From Lenisia limosa (lineage: Eukaryota > Protista > Breviatea), in the NCBI GenBank assembly GCA_001655205.1, contig LPNZ01009898.1, positions 1-33,227 on the forward strand: DNA of 33,227 nt, in the 5' to 3' direction. The translations under genes were made by a program, and so were the position numbers. This document shows, one piece after another, positions 1,753-23,667 of this stretch (within the stretch, counting starts at the first letter, position 1; every line of letters starts with the position of its first letter). The notes below the pieces were generated by a model that did not search any database, was not told where the DNA came from, and saw only the letters and a list, made by a program, of their open reading frames with translations.

Positions 1753-4700
1753 TTAAGGACGGGGTGGGAGGTCGGCAGAGCGCGTTACATCACCCTGTCC
1801 GACGGGGCCTGAGGGGTCTAGATGGATTGGGGGGCTGTAGCGTGAGGAGAGCTACTCAGAGCGTTTACAATTGAAGAGTATCACTGCACCCCCCCACTCG
1901 GACTCTCTACGACCCTCCATCCAAAGCGGTTCGTCATTGGTGTGCGTTAGCCTAAAACAATCAGTCTTCTCCAGACACAGTTCATTTCAGCTTTCGTCCT
2001 TCTAACATTATCCCCCCCTCCAGACCGTTGGCTCTCGCGGCTCTTGGGCCTGGAGGCCCAGGGGGAGTGGGTTGAGGGCGGCGCGGCCATTGTGTTGGCT
2101 CGACGGCGACGGGGGGCTGAATACCTGTGGCATGACAAAAGAGCTGAGCCCAAAAAAAGGGCAGCATTGCCTATCATATGTGGCATTGGTAAAATCACAA
2201 CCAGCGCATACGGTGGGGTGGATGGATTAAAGAGGTTGGATGAAACGGACATTGAAGAGACGGAGGAGAGACGGCGGGGGCGGACCTGATGTTTCAATTC
2301 ACAAATGGCTCATTACCTTTGGAGGGGGGGATTCTGGGCTATGGAAGCAAGCAATTCGAAGAGCTTTCAACCACTATACTGTCAGACATACCAATCGAGC
2401 AGACTTCCTGCTAAAGGTTCACGGACTTTATGATAACATGCAACCAACCATATCGAACTCGACTTCCTCTCTGGCATGCATGACAAGGCCCTTCGCCTTA
2501 TCCGAAGGGTCCGATGGTGTCAACTGCGGAGGTGAGCTTCTCAAAGGGGCAAATGGGCAAAGACGAGACAGTTCTTACTTGAAAGCAGAAGTTGCGTTTG
2601 TAGACTTGGTAGGGCACAGGAGCCACAAGCATGTTGTGAACAGTGACGCAACCCTTCTCAGTCATACCCTCTGACGACTGCAAGGTCAGCGCTGTTCACA
2701 GCAAAAGATTGAAGCAAATTGTAAGAGAATTGAAGAGTAAAATNNNNNNNNNNNNNNNNNNNNNNNNNNNNNNNNNNNNNNNNNNNNNNNNNNNNNNNNN
2801 NNNNNNNNNNNNNNNNNNNNNNNNNNNNNNNNNNNNNNNNNNNNNNNAACGTCTCTCACTTGTTGATGCTTGTAGTAGGTCAGAACACGGTTTTTGAGTT
2901 CAAACGTGCGAATCTTCCAATTCTTAAACCTGAGTCGTGAGGAACAAACTGTTTTGAGAAGAGATAACTTCATCAGAGGAAAAGGAGCCAGGTCCCACCG
3001 TCCACGTGCTAGTTTGGTCAGCATCCCCTTGAGAGCGACAGCCTCGGGCTTAATCTCAATGTCATCCAGGTCCCTACGTGGGTTAGTCATTGAATGTCAA
3101 CAAAGAAAATGGGGTGCTTTGAGCCTACTCATTGTTCATCCACAGCGACTCGGCATCACTGTCAATCTGAAGACATGAGTATGTGTTGTTGTTTCATACA
3201 AAGCTTCATCCAGTTTATGGCGAGAAATGGGCATTCAACAAACTAAGGCGTTATACCTCAGGGCTAGCCATACATGTCCTGGGGCTGGGCAAGTCCGGCG
3301 TTGTGTCCTCTGTTTGGCACTCCGCATGAACCTTCGGAACTCGCCTACTAAAAATGTTAGGGGTTGTGGAAGCCAACAATGTGACTGCATACCTTCTAAC
3401 CCTCTTTCTTCTGTTGCCTTCACCGTCGCTTTCAGTAACACGCTGGTCCGAACCAGGCTCAGTCTCTCCATCACTGTCGTCTGGAAGCGTCCGGGGGTCT
3501 GGAGGAGTGAGAATGGCGGTACACCGGATACGTCAAGGACTGCCCGCACCTTCGGTCTGAACGCCATCATCCTTCACGGCCTTCTTGCGGGCGTCAGCCT
3601 CAGCAATGGCTGTTTCGGCCACGGCGGCTGCTCGAGATGATTCAGCTGCCGCATTGACTGCTTCGACCCTGCACTATTACAATGCTACGTGCAATTTGGA
3701 ATATGCGTTTGTAATCTTCCATTTTTAGGCAATATTTCTGAAGAAGAACTACTTAATTAAAAGCGTGTTCCCTTCTAAAGGTACTATGTCACCCATCAGA
3801 CCTTGCCTGTTCATGGGATGCCGCCTCAGCAGCAGCCAGCACCTGCAGGGCAACAGCTTCCTGCTTCGCACTGGTGGCTTTTTGCTTCTCTACAGTAATC
3901 TCCTTCTCCATTGACAACAGAGCTTCTTCCCTTTGGTCGAGTTCGGACTGTCGCGTCATCAAAGACGCCTCCTGTTCAGCAACAGTCTTGGACCTCTCAT
4001 CAGCCTGGGGTGGTGAGCTGCATTTAATGTTGCCCCAAGGCTTCACAAAAGTGCCAAACATCGAGAAATTATTGATGAAAGCTGTTTCTATATATTTTGT
4101 AACAATGTAACATTCTATGATGGTGAAATGCAAACTTCATTTAGCAAGCTATTTGCGGATGTGATTATTTCGGCAGCTTCTTTCTTCATGTCGTTGATTT
4201 CTTTTTCCGATTCGGCCTGATGAATTAAAAAGATGGATAATATCAAATATAACGAGAGACAATGCAGTAGATAATTGTAAACTGCAAGACAAACCTGTTT
4301 GTCTTCCAATTTTGCCTCAAGTGTACTGCAGCGCAACTCACGGTCGGAAAGGGCTTCCTCTCTAATTCCAAGTGCATTTTCAGTTTCTTTTGACTCATTC
4401 TCAAGAGATTTGATGTTTTCTTCTCTTTTCTTTAGAGCCTCGGAAAGGCAGACGATTTCAGCCTCGCGGTTGTTGAGGTCTTCATGCCGCTCTTCAGCCT
4501 GTGAAGTGTTAAAAAAAAAACCAGCAGAAAGGGATTACTCATCAACCATAGTTGTTGCATAGTATAATATATCATATCCCCGTGAAAAGATGACCCATCG
4601 CACTTCGAATGTTTTGTCGGTTGCAGCTTGGTGGAGGGAGTCGGCCTCCTCCTTCCGAGCGCTGAGATGGGCAAGCTTTTTCTAGAGCGTCAATACAATT

Positions 4701-7700
4701 TCATGAAGAATTTCTCCCCCCCCCCCCCCCNNNNNNNNNNNNNNNNNNNNNNNNNNNNNNNNNNNNNNNNNNNNNNNNNNNNNNNNNNNNNNNNNNNNNN
4801 NNNNNNNNNNNNNNNNNNNNCAGTTTCGACTCCGCTTGGGCGGTCTGCTTGGCCACAGTTTTCATCATATCACTTGTTCGGGCCTCTCGATCGTTGATGG
4901 CGTCCTCCTTGGCGGCTACGAGCGCCTCCCTTTCGCAAAGCTCCGACGTCTTATCCTCAAGGTCAACAGTCCTGGCATCAAGGGTGGATTTGCTGGCATT
5001 CAGGGCATTCTTGCGGATCTATAATACATCAGTTGAGAGATGTTATTTCGGTATGATGATTTTTGCAGCAATTCAAAAACTATAATTGTCAGATTTCTAT
5101 GATTCTGAAAACAGTACCTGGAGGGCGTCATCGAACTCTTCCAGGGCTTCATTCCGTTCATCTTGGTCATTGGCACGCTCACTCAAGACCTCTGTTTGAA
5201 GATCTATCTCTTGCTGAAGCTGTCCGAGACGGATGAGTTCCTGTGCGTTGTCTTCTTGGTTCTGTCTGTTTACCTCAGCTTGTTTCGAAAGGGCTTTTTC
5301 CTTTTCAGAGCAGTCTTCCTCTCTCTGTACAAGTTCTTTCAATTCCTTTTCATTCTCTTCTTCCTTTCGCATAACCTCTGACTCTTTTGTGTTCAAAAGT
5401 TGCTCCTTCTGCATGTTCAATTCGGCTTTCTGCAAGTGTTCGTTGTTTGCTTGAGAAAGCTCTTCTTCCTTAACCTTTAACTCCTCCTCTTTATGGAATG
5501 CTGAATCCTCTCTGTCCTCAAGAACACATTCCCTCTGCAGAATAATATCATTCTTTATCTTCAAATTTTCTTCTTTCTTCGCATTTTCCTCCGAAACCTC
5601 CTTGTTCTTACCCTCAGATTCCTGAAGTACCTTCTCTTTCTGACTTAACATGACTTCCAGTGTTTGATTATCTTCCTTCTTCTTCTCCACTTCTTCTTCA
5701 TTCCTCAACAGTTTCTCTGTTCTCTCATCCAGATCAGCCTTGAGACAATTCAATTCTTCATCCAATTTTCCATTTTGTTCCTTCTTGGCTGCAGCAGCTT
5801 CTTCAAGAGTAGCGAGCTCTTCTTGCTTCTTTTGATTGCATTCTTCTTTTTTCCGAAGTTCTTCTTCCTTCGCCTCCAACGAAGCCTCCTTCTCTAAGCA
5901 AGACTCATTCATGAGCGCAAACTCTTCCTTCTCTTTTTCAAGTGCGTGCTTCTCTTCTTGCAGTTGACGCTGAGTACATATAAGATGTTCAGAGCTTTTG
6001 AGGTTCTCATTTCCCTTTATTTCATTTTCATTCTCTTTTCTTTGAACTTTATCTTCTTTTCCTGCCAATTCTGTTTCTTTCTTCTTCAGTTCTTCTTCTT
6101 TTTCAGCAACCTCATTTTCTCTATTCTGAATACCTGATTGTCTGAGAGCAAGGTCATTTTCTTGAGTTTTGAGATCTTCAAATCTGTTCTTATAACCATC
6201 TTCCATTGCTGCCAACTCTTCTTCTTTGAGTTTCAATTCTTCTTCATTGGCCTCATTCTTCCTTCTGCTTTCCTCTTCTTTCTGTTCAAGAGAAATGGTG
6301 TCATTCTTGAATGTTTCTTCTCGTAAGTGCAGCTCTTCTTCTTGCATCTTCTTCTTATCTTCCCAATCATTTTTCATCCGATTTAATTCTTTCCTCTCTA
6401 CTTCAAGCTTTTCTTCTTCCTTCTTTAATTCTTCCCTACTTGCTTCTAGCTTTTCTTCCGCTTCCTTCAATTCTTCTTTTTCAACTCGAAGATTTTCTTC
6501 TTCATTCTTCAAGTTTTCCTTATCTGCTCGCAACTTTTCTTCTTCTTCCTTCAATTCTTCCTTATTTGCTTGCACGTTTTCTTCTTTCTTCTTCAATTCT
6601 TCCTTAATCTTTTGCATCTCTTCTTTTTCTTCCATCAATTCTGCCCTTTCTGTTGCAAGATTTTCTTCTTTCTTTTTCATATCTTCCCTCTGTGCTTCAA
6701 TCTTTCCTTCTTCATTCCTCAATTCTTCTCTATGAGTTTTCAGCTTTACTTCCTCCTCCTTCAACTTTTCCTTTACAGTTTGAATATTGTCTTCTTCCTC
6801 CTTCAACTCTTTCCTCAGAGCTTCAAGCTTTTCTTCTTCCTTCTTTAATTCTTCCTGATTTGCTTGAAGCTTTTCTTCCGCTTCCTTCACTTCTTCCTTT
6901 TCAAATAAAAGCTTATCTTTTTCATTCTTCAAGTTTTCCTTATCTGCTCGCATCTTTTCTTCCTCTTCCTTCAATTCTTCCTTAATTGTTTGCAAGTTTA
7001 TTTCTTTCTTGTTCCATTCTTCCTTAATCTTTTGCATCTCTTCTTTAACTTCCATCAATTCTGCCCTTTTTGCTGCAAGATTTTCTTCTTTCTTTTTCAT
7101 ATCTTCCCTCTGTGCTTCAATCTTTCTTTCGTCATTCTTCAATTCTTCTCTTTGAGCTTTCAGCTTTACTTCTTCCTTCGTCAACTTTTCCTTTACAGCT
7201 TGAATATTGTCTTCTTCCTTCTTCAGTTCTTTCTTATCTGCTTGCATTTCCTCTTCTTCCTCCTTCAATTCTTTCCTCTCTGCTTCAAGGTTTTCTTCCT
7301 CCTTCTTTAACTTTTCCTTTCCAGCTTGAAGAATGTCTTCTTCCTCCTTCAACTCTTTTCTCTTAGCTTCAAGCTTTTCTTCTTCCTTCTTTAATTCTTC
7401 CTTATTTGCTTCAAGTTTTTTTTCGGCTTCCTTCACTTCTTCTTTTTCAACTAGAAGATTATCTTCTTCATTCTTCAAGTTTTCCTTATCTGCTCGCATC
7501 TTTTCTTCCTCTTCCTTCAATTCTTCCTTAATTGCTTGCAATTTTTTTTCTTTCTTCTTCAATTCTTCCTTAATCTTTTGAATCTCTTCTTTTTCTTCCA
7601 TCAATTCTGCCCTTTCTGCTTCAAGGTTTTCTTTTTCCTCCTTCAACTCTTTCCTCTCTACTTCAAGCGTTTCTTCTTCCTTCTTCAATTCTTTCAACTT

Positions 7701-10700
7701 TACCTCAAGCATTTCTTTCCCCTGTTTCACTTTTTCTTTTTCAATTTGAAGACTTTCTTCTTCCTTCTTCAATTCTTCAATATCCGCTTGCATCTTTTCT
7801 TCTCCCTTCTCCAATTCTTTCCTCCGTGCTTCAAGCTTTCCTTCTTCCCTCTTCAATTCCTCATCCTTTCGATTAAAATCTTTTATTCTTGTATCTTTTT
7901 CATTGTCAAATTCTTTAGTTTTGAAAGAAAGTTCTTCTACCTTGGAAGCAAGATGAGATAAACTCTCCTCAAGCTGTTCAACGTTCTTCTGGTGCTGGGA
8001 TTTGTTGTTCTCCAGTTCCGCGCTTAACTGGGAGTTGTTTTGAGCTTTTAAGACAAGATCTTCTTCTTTCTTTGATAGTTCTTCATTTTTTAGCTGAATA
8101 TCATCAGATTTCTTTTTCAGCTCTTCCTCCTTTTGAGCAAAAGCTGTGTTTTGGTCAAACAGTTGAGAGATCTTTTGTGAAAGTTCTTCTTGACTTACAG
8201 ATAGAGCCAACTTTGCTTTCTTATGTAACTCAACACTCTCCAAGTGAACATCTTGCTTTGATATTAATTCAGCTTCTTTTTCGAGGAGTTTCTTTTCTCT
8301 TTCTGATAATTCATCTGCTTTTGTGGAATTATCTTCTTGCATCTGCTTCAACTCTAGTATTAAGCGTTCGCTTGAAGCTTCCTTCTCCATCAGCTCTTCC
8401 TCTCTTTCTTGACATTGCATTTCAAATGTCCCCTCCGTCTCTTCCAATTTAGCTTCACGGTCATCAGCTGCGGCCATAGCATCAGCCAGGCGCTGGGAGA
8501 GAGAGTCAAATTCGGAGGTTCTGAGTTCCAACTATTAAGTGAGAAATGATTGTCCCCAGATAAATACTTCAAAAAGCAAAGAAAGAGCAGCCACCACATG
8601 TTTACAACATCAACAAGGACAAACCTTCGATCGTTCATCACGTAGCTCGGCTGCTTTTGCTTCAAGTTCCTGCATATATTAGAGCCACAATTGATTGCTT
8701 GGTGCAATTGTGTTTATATTGTTTGTTTATTTCATTTTTTTAGATAAAAATAAAAAGATAACACACACTCCCACCTTGGACTCAAGGTTCAACCCTTTTT
8801 CTCGAGACTTCAGAGTTTTCTCAATTGCGGAACACTCTTCAACCTTGGCATTAAGATTTTCAGTTGCAGCTGATAGAGATTCCTCAGCACTTTCAACAAA
8901 CAGAAGTCGTTCAGCCTGGTCTTTTGAGGAGAGCTCTGCTTCGTTCCTTGCAGTCTCAAGCTCAGCTGCTGCCTCTTGTCTGTCAGTCTAAAAGGGTAAC
9001 AACGCTGAGTACTTGAACTAACGTGAGATTAGAGGATAATCTTATTGGGCAATTGAATGGATTAAAAACTGATACATTATCCCCACACCTCCCCAATCCA
9101 TCACCTACATAATTATATATTCTTGTAAGTTCATTTCCATAGGGGGTTCACCCCCCCCCCCNNNNNNNNNNNNNNNNNNNNNNNNNNNNNNNNNNNNNNN
9201 NNNNNNNNNNNNNNNNNNNNNNTTCAGCTACTGCCTGTAGTTGCTCAAGTCTCTGGGACATAGTCTCCAACGCTACCGATGTTTCTTCAGCCTTGACCTG
9301 TGCCTCGAGCAGCTCTGAACTTTTGACTGAAAGAGATTCCTCCAGAATACTGGCAGCAGCTTCGCGATCGCCAAGGTCCTTCTCACGACTTTCAAGAGCA
9401 GAAGCAGAGTGACGAAGTTTTGTTTCTCTTTCTGAGAGTTCTGACTCTAGGGTGACAGAGTTGTCTTCTCTTGTTTCAAGCTTCAAAGACTTCAGGTTAA
9501 GGTCCTTTTCGAGTTCAGTTAGCTCCTAATACGATTAGAAAAAATTTAGGCAAATTCTGGAAAGATGTTGCCGAAAAGAATAACTGGAGCAACACAAACA
9601 GACCCCTCAGGTACCAACCGAGTCTTTCAAAGCGAGATGGGAAGCTTTGTTAGTTAGTTCATCAAGCATTTTAGCAGCTTCGGCCTCGTGGAGAGTAGCT
9701 TCTTGGTTGAGGTCCTCAGCCTAGTGATGTCATATGAACAAATATCTTAACTAAGATGGTTTTTTATGACATGGGTATCACCTGTACAATTGTTCAATTA
9801 ACTGTACACAATGATTTAATAACCCCCACCTCTGATTGAGCCTTATCCAACTTGGCTTTTGACTCTTCAAGATCAATTAACTTCATTCCAAGGTCAGAAC
9901 GAAGTTGAGAAACAGATGTCTCGGTTTCACACATAAGCTGTGCAGCTGATTTTTCAGCATCTTGTTTGGTTTTATCTGTTTCACTTTCAGCATCCGATCG
10001 AAGTTTTGCGCAATAGTCAACAGCATCGGCGATCCTCTGATCACAGTCAGCTTGTGCTTTCTTCAACTTGGCCTCAGCATCTTCCAGATTACAGGTGGCT
10101 TCATGGCGCATTTCCATAAGTTCCTCCCTCTCTGACTCTAGTCGGTCCGATTCCACTGAGAGCTCATTTCGAATTCGATAAATTTCCTCCTTGTCCCTGT
10201 CAATGTCCTCACGGTCATAGTCAATGCGGTCGGAAAGGATCTGAAGGCGCTTCTGTTCCTTCTCGTTTTTGGCGGTTTGTTTATCAACTGAATCTTTTCG
10301 ACTTTCTGCATCCTACGTGTGTTAAGAAATCAAGTAATAAAAAACGCATTTTGATATAATATATTATATATGCAGATATTACAATATATGATATCGATAT
10401 ATACTACTAGAGTAATTCTCTTACCAAGCAGATATCAAACATAGCTTATCATCAAACCTTCAGATACACCTCAGCAAGTTCGTTAGCTTCCTTGGCCTCT
10501 ATTTTGAGCTTCAGAGAAAGGTCGTGATTTGATTTGGCTTCAGAATTCAGAGACTCAGTTTCCAATTTAAGACGATCAGTATTTTGTTTGAGCTCATCTA
10601 ATGCGGCTGTGTCTGCAGCGACCTTCTGAATGTGTTCCTGAACTTCTTGACTGTGCTTACTTTGTGACTGTTCCAGGGTCTTCTCCTTGTCAGAGAGAGC

Positions 10701-13700
10701 CAATGACTGTGACATAAGAGCTTCACTTTGTTCATCCTGGCTCTGCCTTCTTGAATTTAGGTTCTCTTCATTTGACTTCAGCTGAGACAATTTCGCCTCC
10801 AAGTCAGTAAGGCCAGCCTTATGCTCATCAAGTTTCTTCGTGTGCTCTTCTTCTCGGTGAGACAAGTCAACTTCATTCGCTTTATTGCTTTCTTCCCTCT
10901 CAGCAAGCAAATGAGACTGCTCTTCAAGTTTAGACAATGCTATTTGAGCGGCAGCCATTTTTTCATCTGACTCTTTACTCAATCGAAGAGCCTCCTGATG
11001 TGATTCGGAAGCAGATGCCCTCAGCGACTCAGCCTCTGCTTGCATAACCTTAACCACTTCTTCTGTTTTGAGAGCTTCAGTAAGACGAGATTCTTTGTCC
11101 ATCTTGGCAGCTTCTATAATGCTCTGAGCCTCAAGAGAAGCTTGACATTTTGAATCTTCAATTTCTTTCTTCGCTTCGGTAATAGCTGCTTCAGCTTCTT
11201 CTTGAGTCTTTGCAAACTCGGCCTTGTGTTGTTCAAAAGCATCAACAGAACATTGGTGCATGGATTGTCTCTCAACTAAATCCTCTTCCTTCCTTTTGAT
11301 GTCTTCGAGCATAGTGTCAATGTCATCAAGTTGTTTCCTAATATCATCCTTTTGGATTGCAGTAGCTTCTTGAAGGGATTTGATTTCCGATTCACGGGCC
11401 TGAGCATCAGCTTCGCGTTCATTCATTATTTCAAGAGCCTTCGATAATTCAGTATCGCGTTTCTCGGCTTCTTTTTGACGACTAGCTAAAACTTCTGCAA
11501 TTGTGTCGTTCTCTGTTTTTCTCTCAATCACCTTCTGGGTATCTGATTCAAGAGATCTTTTCAACAGTGAACAAGCCTCGGACGAAACAGCAAGGGCTGT
11601 TTCTCTTTGAGCTAACATTTCTTGAGCAGCAACGAGAGCCAGAGATTCAGCCGCATGAGATTTCGCCTTCTGCTCGAGCTCTTGAGATTGCACTTCCAAG
11701 TCCTTCTCTTTTTCTGCAAATAACTCTTCCTTCTGAAGGTTTTCAATCTTCTTGAGAGATACCTCTTCCTTTTGAGCTTCCAGTGCTGTTTGATACTCAG
11801 TCAAAGATTGTTTTTCAGCATGTTGAAGTTCATCAACAGCCTTTTGTTCTTCCTTTTGGGTGTCAAGTGTGACGCGTAGTTCTTCAAGAGTTTCAACGTC
11901 AGTGTTAAACGCTGCAATCTTCTGTTCCATTTCCTCAGAATGTGACTTATATTCTTTTTCCTGGCGTGTCAGTTCAGATTGTTTTTCATCCACAGTATGC
12001 AACTTTTTTGCATATTCTTCTTCCTTCAGAGCTAAGATGGCTTTGGTAGCATCTATCTCCGCAAATTTCTCTTCACTCTCCTTTTGCGATGCATCAAGAA
12101 TGACCTTTGCATCTGCAAGGTTCAATTCAAGCTCTTGAAGGTCTGCTTCCTTTTCGATTTGGGCAAGATTCTTCTCCTCAAAGGCAACTTCATAAGCTTC
12201 CAGTGACACTGAGCGTTCGCTCAACTCAACCTCAAGAGCTTCAAGCATCTTGTCCTTCTTGTTTTGGCACTCTTTTTGATCTTCTAAGGTCAAACTGAGA
12301 TCAGATAATTCAGCCTTTCGACGTGAGAGGTCAGACGCAAGTTCAGCAATGTCACTATCCTTTTCTTGAAGCTCAGCTTGGAATTGCATCATTTCCCCCT
12401 CTTTAGTTTCGACATCTGCTTCCCTTTCAGAGATCTCCTGATCCTTTTGCTCCAGAAGGGCTGCTTTACTCTTTAGGTTGTCGTTAAGGGAGTCAATCTC
12501 GGATCGTCTTGCTGAGAGAGCATCGGAATTAGCAATGAAATCGGCTTCTTTCTCTTCAAATGCGGCTTGTTTGGCAGTCATCTCAAGTTCTGATGAGTTG
12601 AGCACAACGAGTCTCTGGTTCAACTCCTGCTCTTGGTGGTGTAAACGGGAGCTGAGGGCATCCATATGCTGTGATTTTTCAGCCAATTCTGATTCAAAGG
12701 AAACAACCCGCTCATCAAAAGCAGACTGTGATCGCAAAAGCTGCTCTTTATCAGACTCAAGCTTTTCAGTTAAATCATTGAGCTCTTTTTGACCCTGAAG
12801 AAGGGTGGCTTGAGCTTCGTTTAATAGAGCAGTATTTAACCTCAGCTCTTCATTGGCATCATCAAGTTTGCTTTGTTTCGCTTTGACTTCAACTGATTGA
12901 GATGAAAGCTCCTCTTGATCATTCTTCAATTGGACCTGAGATTCTTCAAGCTGTGTTGACGTATCGCGAAGGTTCGCAGATAGAGACTCAAGTTCCTCTG
13001 ACTTCGCGTTATTGGCAGCAACTTTAGTGGCAAGAACTGCAGCCGAAGCAGTCATCGCAACTGCAGCAGTGGCAGCAGCAGCTTTCTCCATATCAAAAGC
13101 AGACTTCTTTTCTGCATAATCTTTTTCATTAGCAGCCAAGGTAGCTTCTCGTTCATCAGCAGCTAATTTATCTGATTCATACTTCTGCTGGTCTTCCTTG
13201 AGCTTTAACTGAGCAGTACTGAGTTCACCTTGATCAGAAGCAATTTTATTGCGGATTTCCAGAAGCAATTCTTTTTGTTTTGACAATTCTGCTCCCTTCT
13301 CTTGCTGTTTTTGCTTGGTTTCAGTCAGTTCCTCTTGTAAATCATTCAATTTTGCTTCAGATTCAGCAAATTCATCTCTAGCAAACTGCAGCTCTTGCTT
13401 CTCATGAGAAAGCTGTTGAGCCTCCTGAGTATGGGTTTCTTGCTTCTTCTTTAAGGCAGCTTGTACATTAAAAAGATCTTGGCGTGACGACATGAGAGCA
13501 TCTTGGTTGCTTTGAAGAGTGTTTTGAGCAGTTTCAAGCTCTGCTTGGTCCTCAGCAATTTCGACCTCCTTTGAAGTCAGAACATCTAAACGAGATTGGT
13601 AGGACTCCTCAAGTTCCAAAAGATCAACACCACGTTGTTTCACTGTCTCCAATTGAGAGGCAAGGCACTCCGTCTTTGCCAGCAATTCGGATTCCTTGGT

Positions 13701-16700
13701 GACTATCTCTTGTTCACGGGCAACTAATGCTGCAGTATTTGTAGACAGAATAGACTCGCGTGCGTCATAGTCTTCAACATCTTTTGTCAACTCATCTTGG
13801 TCAGCTTTCAACTTCTCACATGCTTCAGCAAGATCAGCAGATTGAATGTCCACTTCAGTCTGTTTTGCAGTTGATGCCTCCAAGGCTTTGAAGGCCGCAT
13901 CAGAGTGCTGCTGTGCAAGTTCATTTCGTTGAATGGTATCAGCCTCCAAAGTTTCAAGACGGGTAACCATAGCATCAATCTAGATCAGTCATAAAAAGGA
14001 ATATAATATGTGATAGAACACTGGCGTTTACTAGTTTTCCTTTATCATACCTCAGAGCTACGAGTTTCAAGAGTTCGTTCTTTCTCAGCGACAACCAAGA
14101 GATTTTGGCTGACTTCTTCTGTCTTCTCTTGAAGAGCGGCTTTTTGTATGTCAAGATTCTCCTGTGTTGTCTGTTGCTTAGAAGCTGTTCCGTCTTGCTC
14201 AAGAGTTAGTTCGTGAAGCTCCTTATCAAGTTCACTTAGGCGACTTTTCTCTTGGTCGACTTCGGCTAGCTTTTGGTCAAGTTCCGTCTGAGATTTCGCA
14301 GCAGCTTGCTGTAATTCTTCTGCTCTGACCATAGTTAAGTTGGCATCTTGAGTCAAAGTCAGGGCTAAGGCCTTCAGCTTCTCAGCCTCGTGTAGAGCTG
14401 TCTCGGCTTCCTGCTTTTGGTCAGCAGCAAGGGCTTGGAGTTCCATTGCTTCTTCCTAAAATAACATCATTTGTTTTTTTTTTACCCATCATAAGTTATC
14501 AAAATAAAACAGCAACAGCACCTTTCCGCTTGATGATAATAATATATAATAGTATTCAAACTACAGCTTCAGGCAGTCTCTTTTGTATCTTTCCTCAGAG
14601 CAAACCTGGGAAGACAATGCAGCACTTTCCTGAGCAGAAGCCTTTTTCATGGTCTTTTGAGCCTCCTGTGCGACAGAATTCATCTTGGCTTCACGCTCAG
14701 CAATAGATTCATTGTTAGCCTTGACACGGGAGTTAGCAGCTTGTACCTCCTCCTCAGCAAGTTGGACTCGCTCTTCTGCGTGATCTTGGGCAAGTCGGGC
14801 ATTTTCCTTAGCCTCCTCAGCCTCACTTCGACTCACGGCCGTGGCTTTGGCAACTTCAAGTTCGAAGTTATTTAGACGCTCCTGTAGGGTTGAAAAGGAA
14901 AACAGATACTTGCTTTTTTTGCAAACCACAATCATTTGGCTAACCTTTAGAGTTCGTTCCATTTGAAGAACACCACTTTCACGGATTTCAAGATCCTCTG
15001 TTTTCTTTAACACTTCATCAATAGTGGCTTGAAACTCCGCTTTTTTGGCCATAAGGCTGTCCTCTTCTGCCCGAAGAAGTTTGTCTTTCTGAATATGTAT
15101 GAAAATTGGTGTGTTTGGACTGGATGGTAGTAGAATTCAGCAATATCGTATGATAAAAAAAATAGAGATACGAGGGAACCGATATAGATGATACCATCCC
15201 CATCGACTACCTCAGAATTGCAAGCTTCTACAATCTCCATTTCATCACGAGTTTGTTGGAACTGAGAAAACTTCTCTGTAAGCTGTTGAAGCCCTTCCTA
15301 GTATGATGTCAATTAACATACTCTCTTAGTCTTCAAAAAAAAAATCGATAAGAACCCCTGAAGGTGTTGTTTCATCCCACCTCAAGCTTGGCGGCTTCCA
15401 ATTCTGTTTGAGACTCCACGCTGATTCCGATCTGTGAAGCAAGGCTGAAATGGGTCAGTCTGTTCTCAAGACTTCACGTTTCTCTATGATATACAATAAT
15501 ATCAGATGGCATTATATTTTGCTGATGCTTAACCAACTCCCACCGTTTCAGCTCATCTCGTTCTGTTTTGTATCTCATTGCGGCTTTTTTCAATTTCGCG
15601 GCTTGGTTCTCAAGAGCTGCCTGGATATTGTAAATCGGTTCATAAAAAGAGGAGTTCAATAGGCAGTCAAAGAAGGAAGAGTTCGAAGGGATCAATGCAA
15701 ACCTGCCGGTCAGCTTCAGCAGGGGACTGGATATCTTGCCACTTGACAACCTCACCATCTAGCGCCTGCTTCCACACGGTTTCTCTTTCAGTCCACCGTT
15801 CTTGCCATTCCTACAAGGATTAACTGAATCTTGTGATACACCAAGTGAAGTGAAAAAAAGAGCGAGGTGTTCGATCCAACCTCTTCCCTGATCTTCCATT
15901 TTTCTTGGAGAGCAGAGTTTGAAGCCGTTTGCCACCTTTGCAATAAGAGATAAAAATATAATTTGAAAAACAAATTCCATGAACACAAAAATTCAGTCAT
16001 AACCCTTTTCTAGAAATCAAACTGCTACCACAAAATCTAAAACCAATGCTCACTTAGAAAGTGCATTTTCTGCACGAAGGCTTTCCAATGACTGTTCAAT
16101 CTGAAGTACTCTAAAACATGAACTACTTACTCAGTGACAAAGATGATGAATATGACACTACTCATCGGTATTCTGTTTTTTTTTAAAAAAAACTTAGATA
16201 CTACGTTATACTAAAACACAGGAAGAGAGGAATCCATAAATGAGACCCAACCTTTCCGTCTCATGGTCAAGGTCACTTTCAGCCCTGTTTGCTCTGAAAA
16301 AAATAGTGAAACTTGAGGAAAACAAGCTTTCTGCAAGACACATGTATACACACCTTTCAAGATGGACTTGAGTATTCTTCTGCTCATTTTCAAGTGAAGC
16401 CTGAAGTTCTTTCAGCCGAGAAGATTCCTGACGGGACTTGTCCACCGCTTGTTTGGTCACGTTTTGAAGTATGGTGACTGTCTCACGAGAATCGCTCAGA
16501 GCCTTCCGAAGAATCACGTTCTGTAAAATAAGCCATCCACTTCTAATAATGTTATTCCTTTACTTCGGAATGCCAATTACAAAACAAAAAAAAACGCAAT
16601 TTGCAGGATACCCCCCTCTCTCTCTCTCTCTCCACCTACCTCATTTAAGAGTTGCTTTGATTCCTCAGCAAGTTTGTTTCCAGATGGGAGGTTTTCAGGC

Positions 16701-19700
16701 TCATGAGGCGGACTTAATTGTGATAATCGTGTTAAAAAAATAGACAATGTCAGTTTAGCTTACTTTGGCTCTTCTTCAGGCTCGCTTAAGGACTCCGGAT
16801 AATAGTCAGATTCAACAGGGTCCTCTTCCATTGCAAGTTCTCGGGCATAGTCCGCTGTAATTCCTCCATCATCATATTCATCATCCTCTTCGCCATCTTC
16901 GAACTCCTCATCTGAGTAACAGTTAAAATAAAAAAAAACAAAGTAAAAATGAATGGAAGCCAGAAGACAGTACTGTAATGAATAAAAGACGATTCCCCAA
17001 TGATCTAACAAGCACCACGGCTAGCCAGTCATACCAAGCGAAGACTTCAACCCTATATACCTTAAGTCAAAATACCAAAATGTCAACAAGGATATAGTCA
17101 CACCAGTTTACTTTAGTCTATGATTGGGCAAATCACATGTGAGTAGCTTGAACAATCCGCATAGTGTATTACACCACTGTCAAACCCAAAAATTTCTCCC
17201 CTACTCATACCAAGGCTGTTGGTCACAGCGGTACTGATATCTGCGAAGAAAAGAGTGGCTGAAGTTTCTTCGAATGACTTGACCCACGGAGACACATTTG
17301 CCACCTGAAGGTCATTGAGTATGTTGATAATTGTATTGACAATAATAATATGAAAAGCCAGCAGAATCTGCAAGCAGAGAGAATACTACAAAACATCACG
17401 CATCAACCCTACCAGCCATGTTCGACCTTGACCTCCAAAAGATTTCTTCAAAAGGCTAAAAAGGGTCAAATACTGTTCATTGAAAAAAGCCCCCCCTCCA
17501 ACAAAGTCAAGTTTGAATCTCTGTAGTTGATATGCGCACGCTTGTTGCCCCGAGTTTTCGATGCTAAGTCACTAAGAAAGTAAGATGATGACGTTGAGAC
17601 AAACGGAAACGTTTTGAACAATATAATAGATTTGGTATATAAATTAATCAAAATGAATGAACAGCCCTAACAAAAACCCCTCACATTATCACTCTTCCAA
17701 GAAAAGACAGGGACATGTTGATAGCCTTTGCTTCTTGTCCTGAATTGCAATGAATTGGGCAACAACAAAAAGCCAGAAATGCATAACGGTTATTTAATCC
17801 AAGTAACAAAAACCCACGATCGGCCTTCTGAATGTCCTTCTCGCTCCCGGCTAGGATACCGAAGGTCAGAACAACCGTCTCTGGCTCGGGGCTAAGGAGA
17901 TAATATGTCATAAAACTGAACTGTTGACATTTTTTTAAAAAACACTCTGGAGTTTCTGAAAAGATGAAAATAATAAAGATATTAGAGCGTATCCAGATAC
18001 TACCCGATGAATACTGTTACTATATGATATGATTTATTGTTAACTAAAGATATTTGAACAGATACTCAGGAAACAACAAGCAATGATCAGCAATACACCA
18101 ATATGATACAATAGGGCGTCACAAAAGTCAAATAAAAAAGACTGAATTTTCTATTAATCCTTGAAAACTCTCGATATTTTATAGGTCTTTTTCTTAGGGA
18201 AGTGGAGCGTGACAGGCTCTCCCACCTTGTGAACTTGGTGATTGTAAAGTTGACAAGAGTGTGACTGCGTGAAGATGTGGCACGGCACCCCGCGTGGGCT
18301 GTGAGCGATATTAGGCTGAGATAAGTGGAAACAGTATAAGAAAGTAAAAAAATTATCAGAGACTTCTAAAAAACAGGAAACCGTTGTGAACACCTCGTAT
18401 TATCGACCCAAGAGCCCACCAGATTCTCGGGTAGCCAGTGCGCTGGAGAGCATTGAACGCGAGTCGGCTGGTCCCTGAATGTGCACCCTGAATCATAAGC
18501 AATAAACATCACTCTTTGTTGATAAGAAACCAACTTGCATCATCTCAACCCACTAACTCCTGCAATCCGTCAACAAAGGGCCCCGTAATTTTGTTCTCTC
18601 GGATCCGTAGCTTCTTCCTTTTCGCCAATAAATCATATGGCTGGTCTTTGTATAGCTCCACTGCGCTGTAGAGAAGGTTATGAACAAACTTCATAAAAAA
18701 AACAAAGAGAAAATGCAACAGAAAAAATAATGAACTATTGAGATACCCGACGTCTCGATTTTCTTGATATGCAGTTTTGAGACACAACACAGCCCAAAAC
18801 AACACAGTTGCCCACCTTGCTGTGAGCATAATCCGACCTTCTGATCGATTGACCTGGGTTGTGAAGAGAATACAGGAGAACGCTACCATAGCAGGCCCAA
18901 TTTATCAAGTTTGTTCTTCCCACGCCTCTATCCTAGTACCATTTCAGCAAGTTGTACGGCGGCACGCGGGATAATGCCGAGGTCTTTTCGATTTCCAAAC
19001 ATTGTGTGCGTCTTGCCTCTGATACATGAGGGAAAATGGGAAATGAAGTACTGTTGAGCCTTAAAAAAACCCCGCCTACGCTCCAGTTTGACCGTATGCA
19101 AGAACAGTCGCAGGACACCCTGGTCAATTAACAGTTGACTCTTGTTGGAATGGATGTGTTTCCCAAATTTCTGGCAGAAGGCCCATTGTGCCCACCTTGC
19201 ATGACGGTTCTAATAGCCGGGACGCCAATGGCTGCGAAAAGGGACTGCTGGCTTCCTAAATCAGTGAAACATTGAAGCTGACACAGGATTTACCATTTTG
19301 CTCAGAAAAGACAGCATCAAATTGGAATGTTTTCCTTGGGGGTCTGTATGTCCGGCCAGGGGGCTGCTTAAGACGACATTGTCCGCCACTTTTCGGTACA
19401 ACTGGCGATCAGAAAGATTAAATAAACTCAGTATTAAGGAACAGGAATTTGAATGCGGAGAAAGAAATCAGTTGAGAGAGTGTCGGATCAACAAAGGCAA
19501 GGGAACCATAACATTCTTATTTTTGCAACAATTGTAAATATAATGCAGGAACTAGAAGGTTGGAATAAGGTGATACAAACGTAGCTGAACAAAGAATACA
19601 GATGAATATAACCTGAATATAACAGTGACTTGTGATAATTCTGCAATAAAGGTGGCAGTATGCGTGTTAATATAACAAAATATACACGAAAACTGGGAAG

Positions 19701-19863
19701 GAGCATTCAAAGGCGTACTTGTTGGTTTTCGAGTCCCATTCTCAGTCGGCAAATGAGGTCGAATCCGCAACACCACACGCACAGGTTCTAATACAAGCTT
19801 ATTTTGAGACCTAGCACTTGTTCGTGCGAGCTCCAGCCCAACGTTGCCGCTACGTGACTCCAT
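1753..19863 (-). CDS. Giant kinesin-like protein (~4,200 aa, ~52 exons): divergent N-terminal motor, acidic linker, ~3,450-aa coiled coil, PH domain, Pro/Arg-rich tail
   Basis: From ATG 19863, successive GT-AG exons join with compatible phases and no stop: 19863-19719, 19401-19294, 19255-19196, 19119-19080, 19018-18940, 18853-18816, 18665-18558, 18487-18420, 18298-18226, 17891-17818, 17739-17685, 17571-17503, 17455-17413, 17304-17211, 16911-16764, 16712-16640, 16520-16354, 16293-16252, 16110-16054, 15935-15881, 15810-15703, 15620-15544, 15444-15381, 15297-15211, 15088-14945, 14881-14606, 14455-14051, 13979-10458 (or 10470), 10312-9830, 9720-9619, 9525-gap, 8987-8775, 8669-8625, 8531-5118, 5018-gap, 4681-4604, 4498-4295, 4216-4136, 4004-3802, 3668-3550, 3498-3393, 3344-3257, 3166-3129, 3073-2999, 2929-2860, 2677-2579, 2523-2449, 2373-2317, 2285-2212, 2124-2026, 1951-1898, 1834-1753. 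Two exon ends are hidden in N-gaps, and the last 2-3 exons are less certain. Confidence 0.8.
2335..3035 (-). other. Pleckstrin homology (PH) domain encoded by five small exons
   Basis: Spliced: ALKGMLTKLARGR-FKNWKIRTFELKNRVLTYYKHQQ-SSEGMTEKGCVTVHNMLVAPVPYQVYKRNFCFQ-LTPSDPSDKAKGLVMHAREEVEFDM-WLKALRIA. This shows the typical PH beta1/beta2, LxYY, KGxI/V, F.F.L and a C-terminal helix with the invariant Trp. Confidence 0.9.
2744..2847. other. Assembly gap (N), inside a PH-domain intron
   Basis: N run. Confidence 1.
4731..4820. other. Assembly gap (N) hiding a kinesin-stalk exon end; flanked by poly-C
   Basis: N run. Confidence 1.
5118..8531 (-). other. Giant coding exon 2 (3,414 nt, phase 0-0): K/E-rich coiled coil containing the tandem array
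   Basis: Acceptor taatag|TTGGAA at 8531 (the ORF-track 'M' is a TTG Leu); donor CAG|gtactg at 5118. Confidence 0.9.
6372..7841 (-). repeat. Coding tandem repeat: 35 x 42 bp (14 aa, consensus about EKLEAxKEELKKEE) with higher-order units of 546 and 420 bp
   Basis: The landmark tccatcaattctgccc (RAELME) recurs at 6631, 7051 and 7597, giving spacings of 420 = 10x42 and 546 = 13x42. Distinctive monomers (MRADKENLKNE, IEAQREDMKKKE, DNIQxVKEKL) recur in the same order. Confidence 0.92.
9162..9222. other. Assembly gap (N) hiding a kinesin-stalk exon end; flanked by poly-C
   Basis: N run. Confidence 1.
10458..13979 (-). other. Giant coding exon 1 (3,522 nt, phase 0-0): non-repetitive E/L/A/K/S/Q-rich coiled coil
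   Basis: Acceptor ctag|ATTGAT at 13979; donor AAG|gtttga at 10458 (alternative GAG|gtgtat at 10470). Corresponds to ORF 10452-13970, whose M is an internal Met. Confidence 0.85.
16617..16632. repeat. (CT)n microsatellite in a kinesin intron
   Basis: ctctctctctctctct directly visible. Confidence 0.7.
17211..19790 (-). other. Kinesin motor domain (exons 1-14 of the giant gene)
   Basis: Spliced translation: PVRVVLRIRP...FQFDAVFS...VLAYGQTGAGKTHTMFG (P-loop)...DLGIIPRA...SAVELYKDQPYDLL...LRIRE...GPFVDGL...SSRSH (switch I)...LTFGILAGSE (switch II, degenerate)...EAKAINMSLSFLGRVI...HINYRDSNLTFLLKKSFGGQGRTWLVANVSP...EETSATLFFA. Confidence 0.95.
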
Positions 19864-20037
19864 TTCAGACCGTGTCTTAATCCCTAATTTATATAGACAG
19901 ACTACATAATAAATAAAAAACTATCAGCAGAATGAATGATTGAATGATTGCGCGAAAAAAAGTTTGTTTTTATACCGGGGCGTGCCGGGGACCGTTTCCA
20001 TTGGCTGCACCTTTCTTCATGGCTGCTCTTTGTACTT
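19864..20037. promoter_or_regulatory. Putative bidirectional promoter (174 bp) between the kinesin (-) and ETF beta (+) start codons
   Basis: Head-to-head ATGs at 19863 (-) and 20038 (+). Inferred from position only; no specific motif recognised. Confidence 0.5.
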
Positions 20038-21568
20038 ATGAAGATTTTAGTCAGCGTGAAACGAGTGATTGATCACGCCATTAAAGTGCGTATCAAAGCA
20101 CCGCTCGCTCCTGTGAAAATCATCACTGGTGGGTTACATTTTGGTCGCTTGAATTGGACATACCTTAGTAAATAATACTATTTTTGTCCAATAGTCTTTT
20201 TTTTCAATTATGAAATATCACTCAAATTTACCTCCTATTCAAATATTATCACATTAATACATTAATGTGTCAGTCTAAGATAAAACAATTACGAGGATTA
20301 CCTATGAAATGGTAACCCCACTAGAGAATGTGAAGCACAGCATCAACCCTTTTGATGAAATAGCTTTAGAGGCAGCTGTTCGTTTTAAGGAACAAAAGCA
20401 TGCGGATGTGGGTGAGTGTTAACATCTTCCCAAAATGAATATTTGACACAATTCTTCGCATTGTCTTCAGATTGAAATGCAATCTTTGCTTTCTAATATT
20501 AATCCAGGAGGTCATCGCAGTGAACATCGGACCATCCAAAGGTGCTGATCAACTCCGGTTGGTGTTGTCACCCTTTGTAGTTCTGATGGTATTTCAAAAT
20601 GGTGCTACTATAACCAAGCAGACATTCGATTGCAATGGGAGCAGACAGAGCTATCCACATTACAACAGATGACGATATTTTACCATTACAGGTCTGCTCT
20701 CTGATTTTTTTTTTTGAAAATTTAGTATTCCTCACGTGATTAAATTTGAATTAAATGAGATAGATTTCACAAGTGCTGGAGCAACTTATTGAAAAGGAAA
20801 AGCCAGACCTCGTGCTAATGGGAAAGCAATGTATGATTCGTGGTAAAATATATTGTCCCCAAATTTTTTGCCAAAAATGCCCTTTACAACTATTCAGCCA
20901 TTGATGGTGACAATGGCCAAACGCCGCAGCTACTTGCTGGAAGATTGGACTGGTCCCAAGGTGGGACATTGTGCCCTTATTGACACCCATCTTGTATAGT
21001 TTTACCACGATATCATGCAAGTCATATACAGTATAAAATATTACATTACGGGTTCTTGAATCTCTCAATTTACTATTTAGCAACTTATGCAGCTGCAATA
21101 GAATTCAAAGAGAGTAATTTGGTATGCCGGATAGCATTTGACCATTGACGATTAACCATAGATGAACGTTGTACGTGAAGTGGACGGAGGAACCGAAGTT
21201 ATTGCAGTACCTCTTCCAGCGGTTGTTTCATGCGACCTTCGCCTCAATAAGCCACGACTACCGAAGCTTCAAGCAGTTATGGTGCGGGACTTTCATTTCT
21301 TTCTTGAGGGTGGATTGGTAGCCTCAAGAAGAAGCGCTGACTGAAGTAGAAGGCCAAAAAGGCCCGTATTGAGTCAATGAGCTTTGAAGAGTTCCTGTGC
21401 AGCACTCCAAAGACGGAAGTGCTGGAACTGAGGAAACCGGAGGTGCGAACCGGAGGAGACAAATCTGCGAATGTTGATGCCTTGATTGCAACTCTCACAG
21501 AAAAGGGTTGGTTATGGTCAGGTAATAGTACCAAGCGACAGAGTTCGCCATATCCTTATCAAACATGA
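20038..21568 (+). CDS. ETFB: Electron transfer flavoprotein beta subunit, multi-exon
   Basis: [19 protein letters not shown] (20038), [118 protein letters not shown]: the conserved ETF-beta motifs in order. The exact 3' end is uncertain. Confidence 0.95.
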
Positions 21569-21867
21569 TATGGAAATATCTGCAGAAGTAGCAAATACTA
21601 TACATTTTTTTTATGATTATACGATATGTAGTACAATGAACAACTCCATTGCGGACATTTACGAATTTAGGACTTATTTGAACAACCAGACATCAACATC
21701 ATTGCAGTTTGCACACTATCATTTTCAGTTATCCTTGAATAGATGAATAAACACACTTTATTCGGGACTTGTGAATACACAAGCCACAATACCTCAGCGA
21801 GACACTAACGAGGGATGGCTGACACGAATCACACCTCACGTCTACAATATGAGCAAATGGCCAATCA

Positions 21868-23528
21868 CTAATGGTTCACAATTATGGGATGCTGATGTAA
21901 AAAAACCATAATTGTGTAACTTACCATTTTGATACACAGGTACACAGGCCTGTCAAAGCCCTGCCTTGAGGCAAAGGTTCCAAGACTTTCCACTGATTGG
22001 AATCTAACAAATGAGACATTGTAAATCATCCAACAAAATCATGCTTAGTGTCTGCTATTGCCCTGACAGTGTACTAAACAAAACAGAACTCCATAATTAA
22101 TATGATCCACACAACAATAAGACACTCACGCCACCACTCATAATTCCTCCCACTTGTACTCTTCTTTCTTTAGTTCTTCAAGGTAGTTTTCCGGGAAGAG
22201 CTTCATACTGCTCGCATTCATCCTCATTTCCTAAGTAAGATACATAAGGTTTGGCACACACATTCAATTTATTAACCTTCATATCACTTTCTGCATACAA
22301 TATTTTAATGAATAAATATGTCATCTAATGATTCTCAAACATGAGATACTAACATCAAAAAAGGTCGACTTTACTTGCTAAAAATCTTAAAAAAGAGACT
22401 TTAAAGTGCAACTTACCAACCTTTGTAGGTTTTGCTGATTTTTTCTTGTAGCTGTCCTTCTTTTGTACCTCCAAAACAAACAATCCCCCAGGCTTCAAGA
22501 GAGACGAAGCTTGAAAGTCAGCATCTTACATTGAAAGGAAAGTGAAAGATTCTTTTCATGTTGCCCAAATGAATTAATGTAAAAACACCCTCAAAACCTT
22601 TCCTAAACAATGCGCGTATACCCTCATCTCCATGGTGTAACTGGACCCATTTGGTCACGCACCAACAAGTGACTGTATCAAATTGTCCATAATGGCTGGG
22701 GTCGTCAAGCGCAATGTTACACACTCCAAACCTACGATGTCAATATAACCAATCACGCGACTGCTTCAAATACACTTCCTACTCAGCATCTACATCCGAA
22801 TAGCTCTCTTTGACTTCCTTATTAGCCAGATCAATAAGATCAGAATCAAGATCCACCCCAACGGCCTTGGACGCGCCAAATGTCCGGGCTGAGCGTGAGA
22901 GAGGGGATGAGCACAAATCAAGAGCACACCATACAATCTACATACACTTGCTGCTACACTAGAAAATAATAATCAAACGACCCACCAATTTCAAGCGTTA
23001 ACAGTCCTCTATGGCACCCAATATCAATGAAACTCTTTTTGCTGAACCACTCTGGCTGAATGTGCTCAAGGCGTGGGTCCTGTCCATGTGAGAAAAGAAA
23101 AATTATGCATAGTGAGATAAGAAAGGAGACAAAATAGCTCGCCGATCATAGAATATATAAAGAAAATTATCAAACTCTCGCTTTTCACATGAATATGTCT
23201 ACTACTGAGACGGAAGGCAAAGCAAAGTCCCTCCAACCTTGCCATCATCGTTTCGGAATTCGTAATAGCCGCGATAGTTTCCGAACTTGAACTTTTCTCG
23301 GGAGGACAACTGTTTTTGCTTCTTCGGAGCTACAAAGAAAAACAATTACACGTAAATGAATAGGAAACTCTACACATTCAATATTTATGAAACAAATACA
23401 AAATTGACCTGCCCGGGGGGGAGGGGGGAGCAACAAATAGAGTACATTGTCAAACCTGGTGAAGCAGAATGCAAGTTATCAGTCTCAGTTTCACTCTCTT
23501 CCACCCCATTCACTGGCGATTCCATCAT
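21868..23528 (-). CDS. MEPCE: Bin3/MePCE-type SAM-dependent RNA methylphosphate-capping methyltransferase, multi-exon
   Basis: Spliced: FKFGNYRGYYEFR...DPRLEHIQPEWFSKKSFIDIGCHRGLLTLEIARTFGASKAVGVDLDSDLI...QFDTVTCWCVTKWVQLHHGDEGIRALFRK...LLKPGGLFVLE...GFDRPVYL, which are the Bin3-family motifs. The start may lie further upstream (ORF 23799 across the N-gap) because 23528 is preceded by an acceptor-like tract. Confidence 0.9.
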
Positions 23529-23583
23529 CTTACAAGTGAGTGAAAAAGAGGCAATGGGGGGGGGGGGCTCTTAGCAATTTAGC

Positions 23584-23667
23584 NNNNNNNNNNNNNNNNN
23601 NNNNNNNNNNNNNNNNNNNNNNNNNNNNNNNNNNNNNNNNNNNNNNNNNNNNNNNNNNNNNNNNNNN
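23584..23667. other. Assembly gap (N) upstream of or within the MePCE 5' region
   Basis: N run. Confidence 1.

Follow-up and report, generated by a model that had tools for sequence, protein, structure and literature searches.

A kinesin-like head with altered switch regions and a retained P-loop predicted in a very large gene of Lenisia limosa

Kinesin heads that do not act as motors are rarely documented. Vik1, KIF26A, KIF7/Cos2 (Costal-2), and TbPH1 have each revealed a use of the kinesin fold other than transport. A further candidate is described here from the breviate Lenisia limosa. The DNA analysed, termed the window, is a stretch of 33,227 nucleotides (contig LPNZ01009898.1 of assembly GCA_001655205.1). 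On its minus strand the window carries a large, multi-exon gene that starts with a kinesin-like head. Residues of both switch regions are changed in this head and the P-loop is retained.

TbPH1 of Trypanosoma brucei is a kinesin-like PH-domain protein and the partner of the X2 kinesin TbKifX2A. Its proposed role is at a specific microtubule structure and not in transport (10.1101/2021.09.29.462327). KIF26A, a kinesin-11, is described as having a divergent head that binds microtubules without being able to hydrolyse ATP (PMC10585591, citing Zhou et al. 2009). KIF7/Costal-2, a kinesin-4, displays the kinesin fold, binds microtubules and is non-motile, and its ATPase is stimulated 3–4-fold by microtubules (PMC12919046). 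Vik1/Cik1 of budding yeast and the fungal 'pseudoKinesin-21' group (PMC5076506) are kinesin folds without motor activity, and Vik1 is the non-catalytic partner in a heterodimer.

Switch regions and P-loop of the head

The switch II codons GGT ATC CTA GCC GGG AGC GAG, found at 17860–17840, give G-I-L-A-G-S-E. Ile (ATC, 17857–17855, Ile252 in the gene model) is situated at the position of the Walker-B-type Asp, and Gly replaces the Val or Ile that precedes it. Set beside the DxxGxE pattern, the ILAGSE sequence keeps Gly and Glu and has lost Asp, and no acidic residue is found nearby in VVLTFGILAGSE that could stand in for it. Switch I reads A-H-A-G-C-R-A-T-S-S-R-S-H, with Arg (CGT, 18284–18282, Arg221) where paralogues carry Asn. 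The NxxSSRSH pattern thus appears as RATSSRSH; SSRSH is kept and Ala is at the conserved upstream Thr position. Asp to Ile and Asn to Arg are changes of two bases each. The P-loop is split by an intron (19093–19080 and 19018–19009) and reads GQTGAGKT, which conforms to GQTxxGK[ST].

Loop 11 consists of 9 residues from LAGSE to EAKAIN, with a gtgggt donor used after 17818. Between LAGSE and INxSL there are 13 residues compared with 17 in five paralogues in which a single exon spans the region, i.e. a deletion of four residues. The short loop depends on splicing, since the 78-base intron found there (17817–17740) is in frame and free of stops; its retention would add 26 mostly hydrophobic residues. 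Retention was rejected on the basis of the canonical splice sites and the hydrophobic content. Two other variants of exon 10 were also rejected: a 25-base GT..AG stretch read as a micro-intron would shift the frame and remove strand beta-7, and an alternative acceptor at ~17960 reaches a stop. A short dispersed repeat (18136–18193) is situated in the 334-base intron that separates the exons of the two switches; many other contigs of the source run match this repeat at 90–95% identity, and summed depth rises there from ~38 to ~266.

The first-pass annotation of this DNA had described a motor with an intact P-loop, Ile in switch II, Arg in switch I and a loop 11 of 9 residues. All four features are reproduced when the codons are read directly, and the switch II codons are identical in two assemblies.

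Published roles of the lost residue bear on what the change may do. In kinesin-1, a bifurcated hydrogen bond links D231 of DLAGSE to T92 of the P-loop and S202 of switch I and shapes the Mg site; in the empty state D231 pairs with K91. Universal conservation is stated for both DLAGSE and SSRSH (PMC4383081). The Walker-B Asp is almost strictly conserved across P-loop nucleoside triphosphatases, and Asp-to-Asn mutants lose activated hydrolysis with no effect on the binding of nucleoside triphosphate; the bond between Asp265 and Thr112 of Eg5 measures 2.59 A (PMC9599734). With Ile at this position and no acidic residue nearby, microtubule-activated hydrolysis is thus expected to be abolished, and nucleotide binding would still be possible. 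The shorter loop 11 and the replacement of Asn by Arg in switch I point in this direction as well. The retained P-loop, RxRP, SSRSH, and switch II Glu would fit a nucleotide pocket that is still in use.

The reading favoured here is that the head is a nucleotide-binding, non-stepping microtubule anchor, and our confidence in it is evenly divided between belief and doubt. With the switch II Asp and the switch I Asn lost and loop 11 shortened, nucleotide would still be bound, and microtubule-activated hydrolysis would not proceed at a useful rate. The head would then serve as a microtubule-binding module that is static or cycles very slowly, without stepping as a motor does, and the stalk and a lipid-binding end would tie microtubules to a membrane or to another structure.

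The kept motifs also bear on a second explanation, i.e. that the head is still active, perhaps as a slow motor or a nucleotide-gated switch. Thr121 of the P-loop together with the serines of switch I would then hold Mg-ATP, which would be hydrolysed without the Asp, in a KIF7-like manner. The P-loop, SSRSH, RxRP, and the Arg and Glu of the switch I–II salt bridge are all present, which suggests selection on the nucleotide pocket, and the low ATPase of KIF7 is functionally needed though the protein is non-motile (PMC12919046). However, the Walker-B Asp hardly varies among P-loop nucleoside triphosphatases and its mutation dramatically retards activated hydrolysis (PMC9599734), VVLTFGILAGSE offers no acidic substitute, and four residues are missing from loop 11, the link between microtubule binding and catalysis. 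An active head is considered unlikely.

Relation to other kinesins and support for the sequence

Three exons match the kinesin model PF00225 collinearly and weakly (20.4, 20.7, and 12.1 bits), each alone below the gathering threshold of 29.3. Pfam and PDB searches were made with single exons; the exons were joined for a check of the frame and for tblastn against paralogue loci. Blocks that can be read are RIRP, FQFDAVF, AYGQTGAGKTHTM, GIIPRA, ELYKD..DLL, SSRSH, LAGSE, AINMSL, NYRDSNLT, FGGQ, VSP, and EETSATLFFA. The RxRP, INxSL, and YRDSxLT blocks are among these (RIRP, AINMSL, NYRDSNLT), with substitutions of basic residues. Judged by these blocks, the head has a true kinesin fold in which the scaffold of the nucleotide pocket is kept: RxRP, GQTGAGKT, SSRSH, and the switch II Gly and Glu.

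The PDB matches of the exons are weak and mixed, e.g. KIF13B, kinesin-2, and KIF1A for exon 7, KIF22 and CENP-E for exon 5, KIF3B for exon 2, and KIF3C for exon 12; therefore no kinesin family is assigned. No PDB match was obtained with the switch I exon or the switch II/alpha-4 exons (E<=10), nor with the alpha-6 exon. The control, a canonical paralogue exon of 42 residues that runs from switch II to alpha-4, matches 126 PDB kinesin sequences (best E-value = 5e-12), compared with zero for the equivalent exons here, where the query was interrupted by 26 intron-coded residues.

Paralogue exons over switch I and switch II were fetched from the Pfam-matched kinesin genes of the same 49-Mb assembly. 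The Pfam kinesin model gives 103 exon matches across this assembly and none in the present contig. All 19 paralogue contigs that cover switch II read (V/I/T/Q)DLAGSE, and NxxSSRSH is found in seven of seven. A degenerate DNA pattern for LAGSE, applied genome-wide, had performed at the level of chance (227 matches compared with 231 for the control) and was replaced by the Pfam-matched exons. A search of the genome with two head exons yielded no paralogue, and with the joined head the best local similarity to other kinesin loci is 45–58% over ~30–40 residues (tblastn). In this comparison the switch deviation is gene-specific, and it appears as part of a general divergence of the head.

This divergence extends to the microtubule-binding face. 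The first-pass annotation had taken the microtubule-binding elements as retained. They are recognisable, but in alpha-4 INKSL reads INMSL (Met for Lys), and in alpha-5 H(I/V)PYRDSKLTR reads HINYRDSNLTF (Asn and Phe for Lys and Arg). In addition, GYN is replaced by GCP, and in alpha-6 TLR(F/Y)AxRAK is replaced by TLFFADIS. In the kinesin-1 alanine scan of Woehlke et al. in 1997, the SKLT Lys and the LTR Arg were reportedly found to have a part in microtubule binding. LTFLL occurs in a paralogue as well (contig C7939), so the LTF change is not diagnostic by itself. In loop 12, four residues are basic (KTRGNKR).

Such changes throughout the head, together with an acidic linker of ~49 residues that replaces the neck coil, would suit a head which has lost microtubule binding as well as catalysis, and which functions as a structural or protein-binding module in a heterodimer, like the motor-homology domain of Vik1/Cik1. 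Kar3/Vik1 is cited as precedent by Benz et al. (10.1101/2021.09.29.462327). Yet the full P-loop and SSRSH are kept here, unlike in Vik1, and the basic residues of loop 12 remain; moreover no candidate partner was identified, and the genome search with two head exons gave no paralogue. This explanation is therefore rated quite improbable.

The only public run that holds the stretch is its probable source, and the Logan contig from this run is identical, with a k-mer depth of ~38 and no variant. A gap-free SPAdes metagenome contig in ENA (L063), found by exact look-up of a 1172-residue stalk open reading frame, shows 100% identity over window positions 9223–23583, head included. L063 probably derives from the same reads and is thus a check of the assembly, not an independent sample. 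The first-pass annotation had proposed that positions 17840–17860 be confirmed in reads; the Logan contig and L063 carry the same bases there, with no GAY (Asp) codon.

These data make it very improbable that the odd residues are an artefact of assembly error or wrong exon choice, or that the gene is a decaying pseudogene. Three observations would suit such an explanation: the RNA run of the study is empty on the stretch, the assembly is fragmentary and gapped, and the last PH-like helix appears in frame +1 when set against the exon before it. But the head is the same in both assemblies, and two base changes would be required for either substitution. Among the minus-strand stop-free segments of at least 25 residues listed between 13000 and 23000, none offers DLAGSE or NxxSSRSH as an alternative exon. 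The 14 head exons join in frame, and the stalk contains stop-free runs of 1175 and 1144 codons, which indicate that the gene is maintained and argue strongly against a dead gene.

Searches for relatives were blank. A word search with the 1175-residue stalk exon gave nothing at E<=1e-5 (proteins of 646–2056 residues), and one with exons 10–11 gave a single candidate, without a score. A metagenome scan with exons 10–11 gave 600 pattern matches, none of them confirmed. Clusters at 90% identity of three open reading frame fragments of the gene are all singletons. An exhaustive HMMER search with a 68-aa stop-free stretch that holds exons 10 and 11 matched only a bacterial repeat protein, which was rejected as spurious. 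These results say little, as the queries were short, divergent exons or coiled coil.

Several points weigh against the head being a nucleotide-binding anchor. The microtubule face is itself altered (Lys to Met in INKSL, SKLTR to SNLTF), so that microtubule binding by the head is an assumption. Basal, non-activated hydrolysis may not need the Asp, as has been discussed for Ras (PMC9599734). On this stretch the study's poly-A RNA run yields no contig in support of the splice model. The short exon and coiled-coil queries found no orthologue that would show the Ile and Arg to be maintained.

Organisation of the gene

The features of the gene are listed in Table 1. The model was built from a reading of the DNA and from stop-free segments. 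The head consists of 351 codons without a stop (19863–17211), and all 13 of its introns are GT-AG, with lengths of 38–334 bases; five of the 13 donors start with GTGGG. As read from the DNA, the gene is single-copy, intact, and very large, and encodes a kinesin head, an acidic linker, a coiled coil of several thousand residues, and a probable PH domain.

Table 1. Predicted exons and regions of the kinesin-like gene (window positions)
Feature	Position	Strand	Content	Basis
Exon 1	19719–19863	-	start codon at 19863, strand beta-1, adenine-pocket motif RIRP (RxRP); donor gtacgc	sequence reading
Exon 2	19294–19401	-	ends in KTFQFDAVFSEQN, the kinesin FxFDxVF block (FQFDAVF)	weak PDB match to KIF3B
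Exon 3	19196–19255	-	SQQSLFAAIGVPAIRTVMQ	splice model
Exon 4	19080–19119	-	GCPATVLAYGQTGA, first P-loop half; GCP compared with the usual kinesin GYN	sequence reading
Exon 5	18940–19018	-	GKTHTMFG..GIIPRA, second P-loop half	PF00225 positions 87–110, 20.4 bits; PDB KIF22, CENP-E
Exon 6	18816–18853	-		splice model
Exon 7	18558–18665	-	AVELYKDQPYDLL..., EIYNE block (ELYKD..DLL)	PF00225 positions 131–167, 20.7 bits; PDB KIF13B, kinesin-2, KIF1A at E 0.02–1
Exon 8	18420–18487	-	VHIQGPADSRSMLSSALATRES	splice model
Exon 9	18226–18298	-	switch I AHAGCRATSSRSH	sequence reading; no PDB match at E<=10
Exon 10	17818–17891	-	strand beta-7 and switch II VVLTFGILAGSE, then short loop 11; donor gtgggt	sequence reading; L063 identical
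Exon 11	17685–17739	-	helix alpha-4 QEAKAINMSLSFLGRVI; preceded by the 78-base intron 17817–17740	splice model
Exon 12	17503–17571	-	basic loop 12 and helix alpha-5 DLASKTRGNKRAHINYRDSNLT	PF00225 positions 272–285, 12.1 bits; PDB KIF3C, E 0.9
Exon 13	17413–17455	-	LLKKSFGGQGRTWL	splice model
Exon 14	17211–17304	-	VANVSP..EETSATLFFADISTAVTNSL, helix alpha-6 and neck-linker-like end	tblastn 49% identity to paralogue C7939
Acidic exon	16764–16911	-	~49 residues, strongly acidic, DEEFEDGEEDDEYDDGG... / DEEFEDGEEDDEYDD...	sequence reading
Coiled-coil stalk	3792–16700	-	includes stop-free exons 13979–10455 (1175 aa) and 8531–5100 (1144 aa)	
C-terminal PH-like region	2500–3096	-	KGMLTKLARG.. FKNWKIRTFELKNRVLTYYK..	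PF00169 E 0.097, 13.6 bits on one piece, below threshold

The acidic exon comes immediately behind the head and occupies the place expected of a neck coiled coil; heptad-like sequence starts in the next two exons. That the acidic residues imitate tubulin tails, or that they fold back onto basic loop 12, is pure speculation. Within the stalk, exon 8531–5100 contains ~35 tandem copies of a 42-base (14-residue) unit, arranged in 420-base super-repeats (6385–7859), which encode a Glu/Lys-rich coiled coil. This repeat accounts for the strong GC and AT skew at 6–8 kb.

The PH-like region is split over several exons, and in the window an assembly gap breaks it; L063 closes this gap. PF00169 was not detected on the gap-filled pieces of the region from L063, searched separately. 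The exon that closes the region (L063:21349–21538, window ~2620–2430, minus strand) reads ...AREEVEFDMVGCMLS followed by a stop in one frame. The +1 frame of the same bases displays a typical PH C-terminal helix with Trp (IWLVACYHKV...), and both assemblies agree. An indel of one base, a small intron of an unusual kind, or truncation of the PH domain could account for the discrepancy.

Gaps of N in the window are found at 2744–2847, 4731–4820, 9162–9222, and 23584–23667, with poly-G/poly-C runs on their flanks. In L063 these gaps are spanned by 99, 47, 63, and 33 bases, respectively, including a G-run of ~12 in an intron of the PH region. The upstream neighbour on the same strand is a multi-exon gene for a Bin3/MePCE-type methyltransferase (window ~22350–23150, minus strand; PF06859, E-values = 3e-8 and 2.9e-5 on two exons).

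Comparison with known kinesin-like proteins

The likeness to TbPH1 is one of domain architecture: an N-terminal kinesin-like head thought to be inactive, a coiled coil, and a C-terminal PH domain, the last being only a candidate here, with a match below Pfam significance. To this extent the parallel drawn by the first-pass annotation stands. The analogy is inexact because Walker A is degenerate in TbPH1 (G93P, T/S95R), whereas here Walker A is canonical and the switches are changed. TbPH1 is also a protein of 110 kDa with a homeodomain-like fold after the PH domain, in contrast to the several thousand residues predicted here. The families around TbPH1 are described as kinetoplastid-restricted (10.1101/2021.09.29.462327), so no sequence relationship is expected. 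The resemblance would be architectural and, if real, convergent.

A broader proposal, which we regard as possible but doubtful, is that a lineage near animals and fungi independently built the TbPH1 design, with a nucleotide-binding, non-hydrolysing head as anchor, a rod of about half a micron, and a lipid-binding PH end. Here the head would have been disabled via the switches with the P-loop kept, and the bound nucleotide would be a structural cofactor that locks the strong-binding state. If true, this would be a second, independent example of a tether composed of kinesin, coiled coil, and PH domain. As for the pseudo-motor interpretation with which the annotation began, it is supported in part: the sequence basis holds and the published residue roles agree with it, but the microtubule elements and the TbPH1 analogy hold only partly.

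KIF26A and KIF26B would belong to the same functional class as that proposed here, a functional resemblance only. They differ in being animal signalling scaffolds with another tail, no giant coiled coil, and no PH domain. KIF7 turns over ATP and needs this turnover, whereas the present head is without a near-universal catalytic residue. Vik1 is not known to have any nucleotide site and carries its motor-like domain at the C-terminus; the present gene has an N-terminal head with an intact P-loop.

The kinesin-3 proteins (KIF1A/Unc104) share the N-terminal head and the basic loop 12, their C-terminal membrane-binding PH domain would correspond to the probable one here, and the best PDB matches of exon 7 are to KIF13B, kinesin-2, and KIF1A. 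However, kinesin-3 proteins have canonical switches, the matches found here are weak (E 0.02–1), and other exons prefer KIF22, CENP-E, or KIF3. No FHA domain, tested for by no dedicated search, was noticed in the gene.

The present status is that of a prediction from sequence for one gene of one poorly sampled protist (small, intron-rich). Having all nucleotide-binding elements other than the near-universal Walker-B-type Asp, the head offers a natural test of the role of this Asp in kinesins, i.e. whether its loss gives binding without turnover or a rigor-like attachment. A non-catalytic kinesin head is already known as a kind from KIF26A, KIF7, Vik1, and TbPH1; what would be new in the predicted protein is the route, by way of the switch residues with the P-loop kept.

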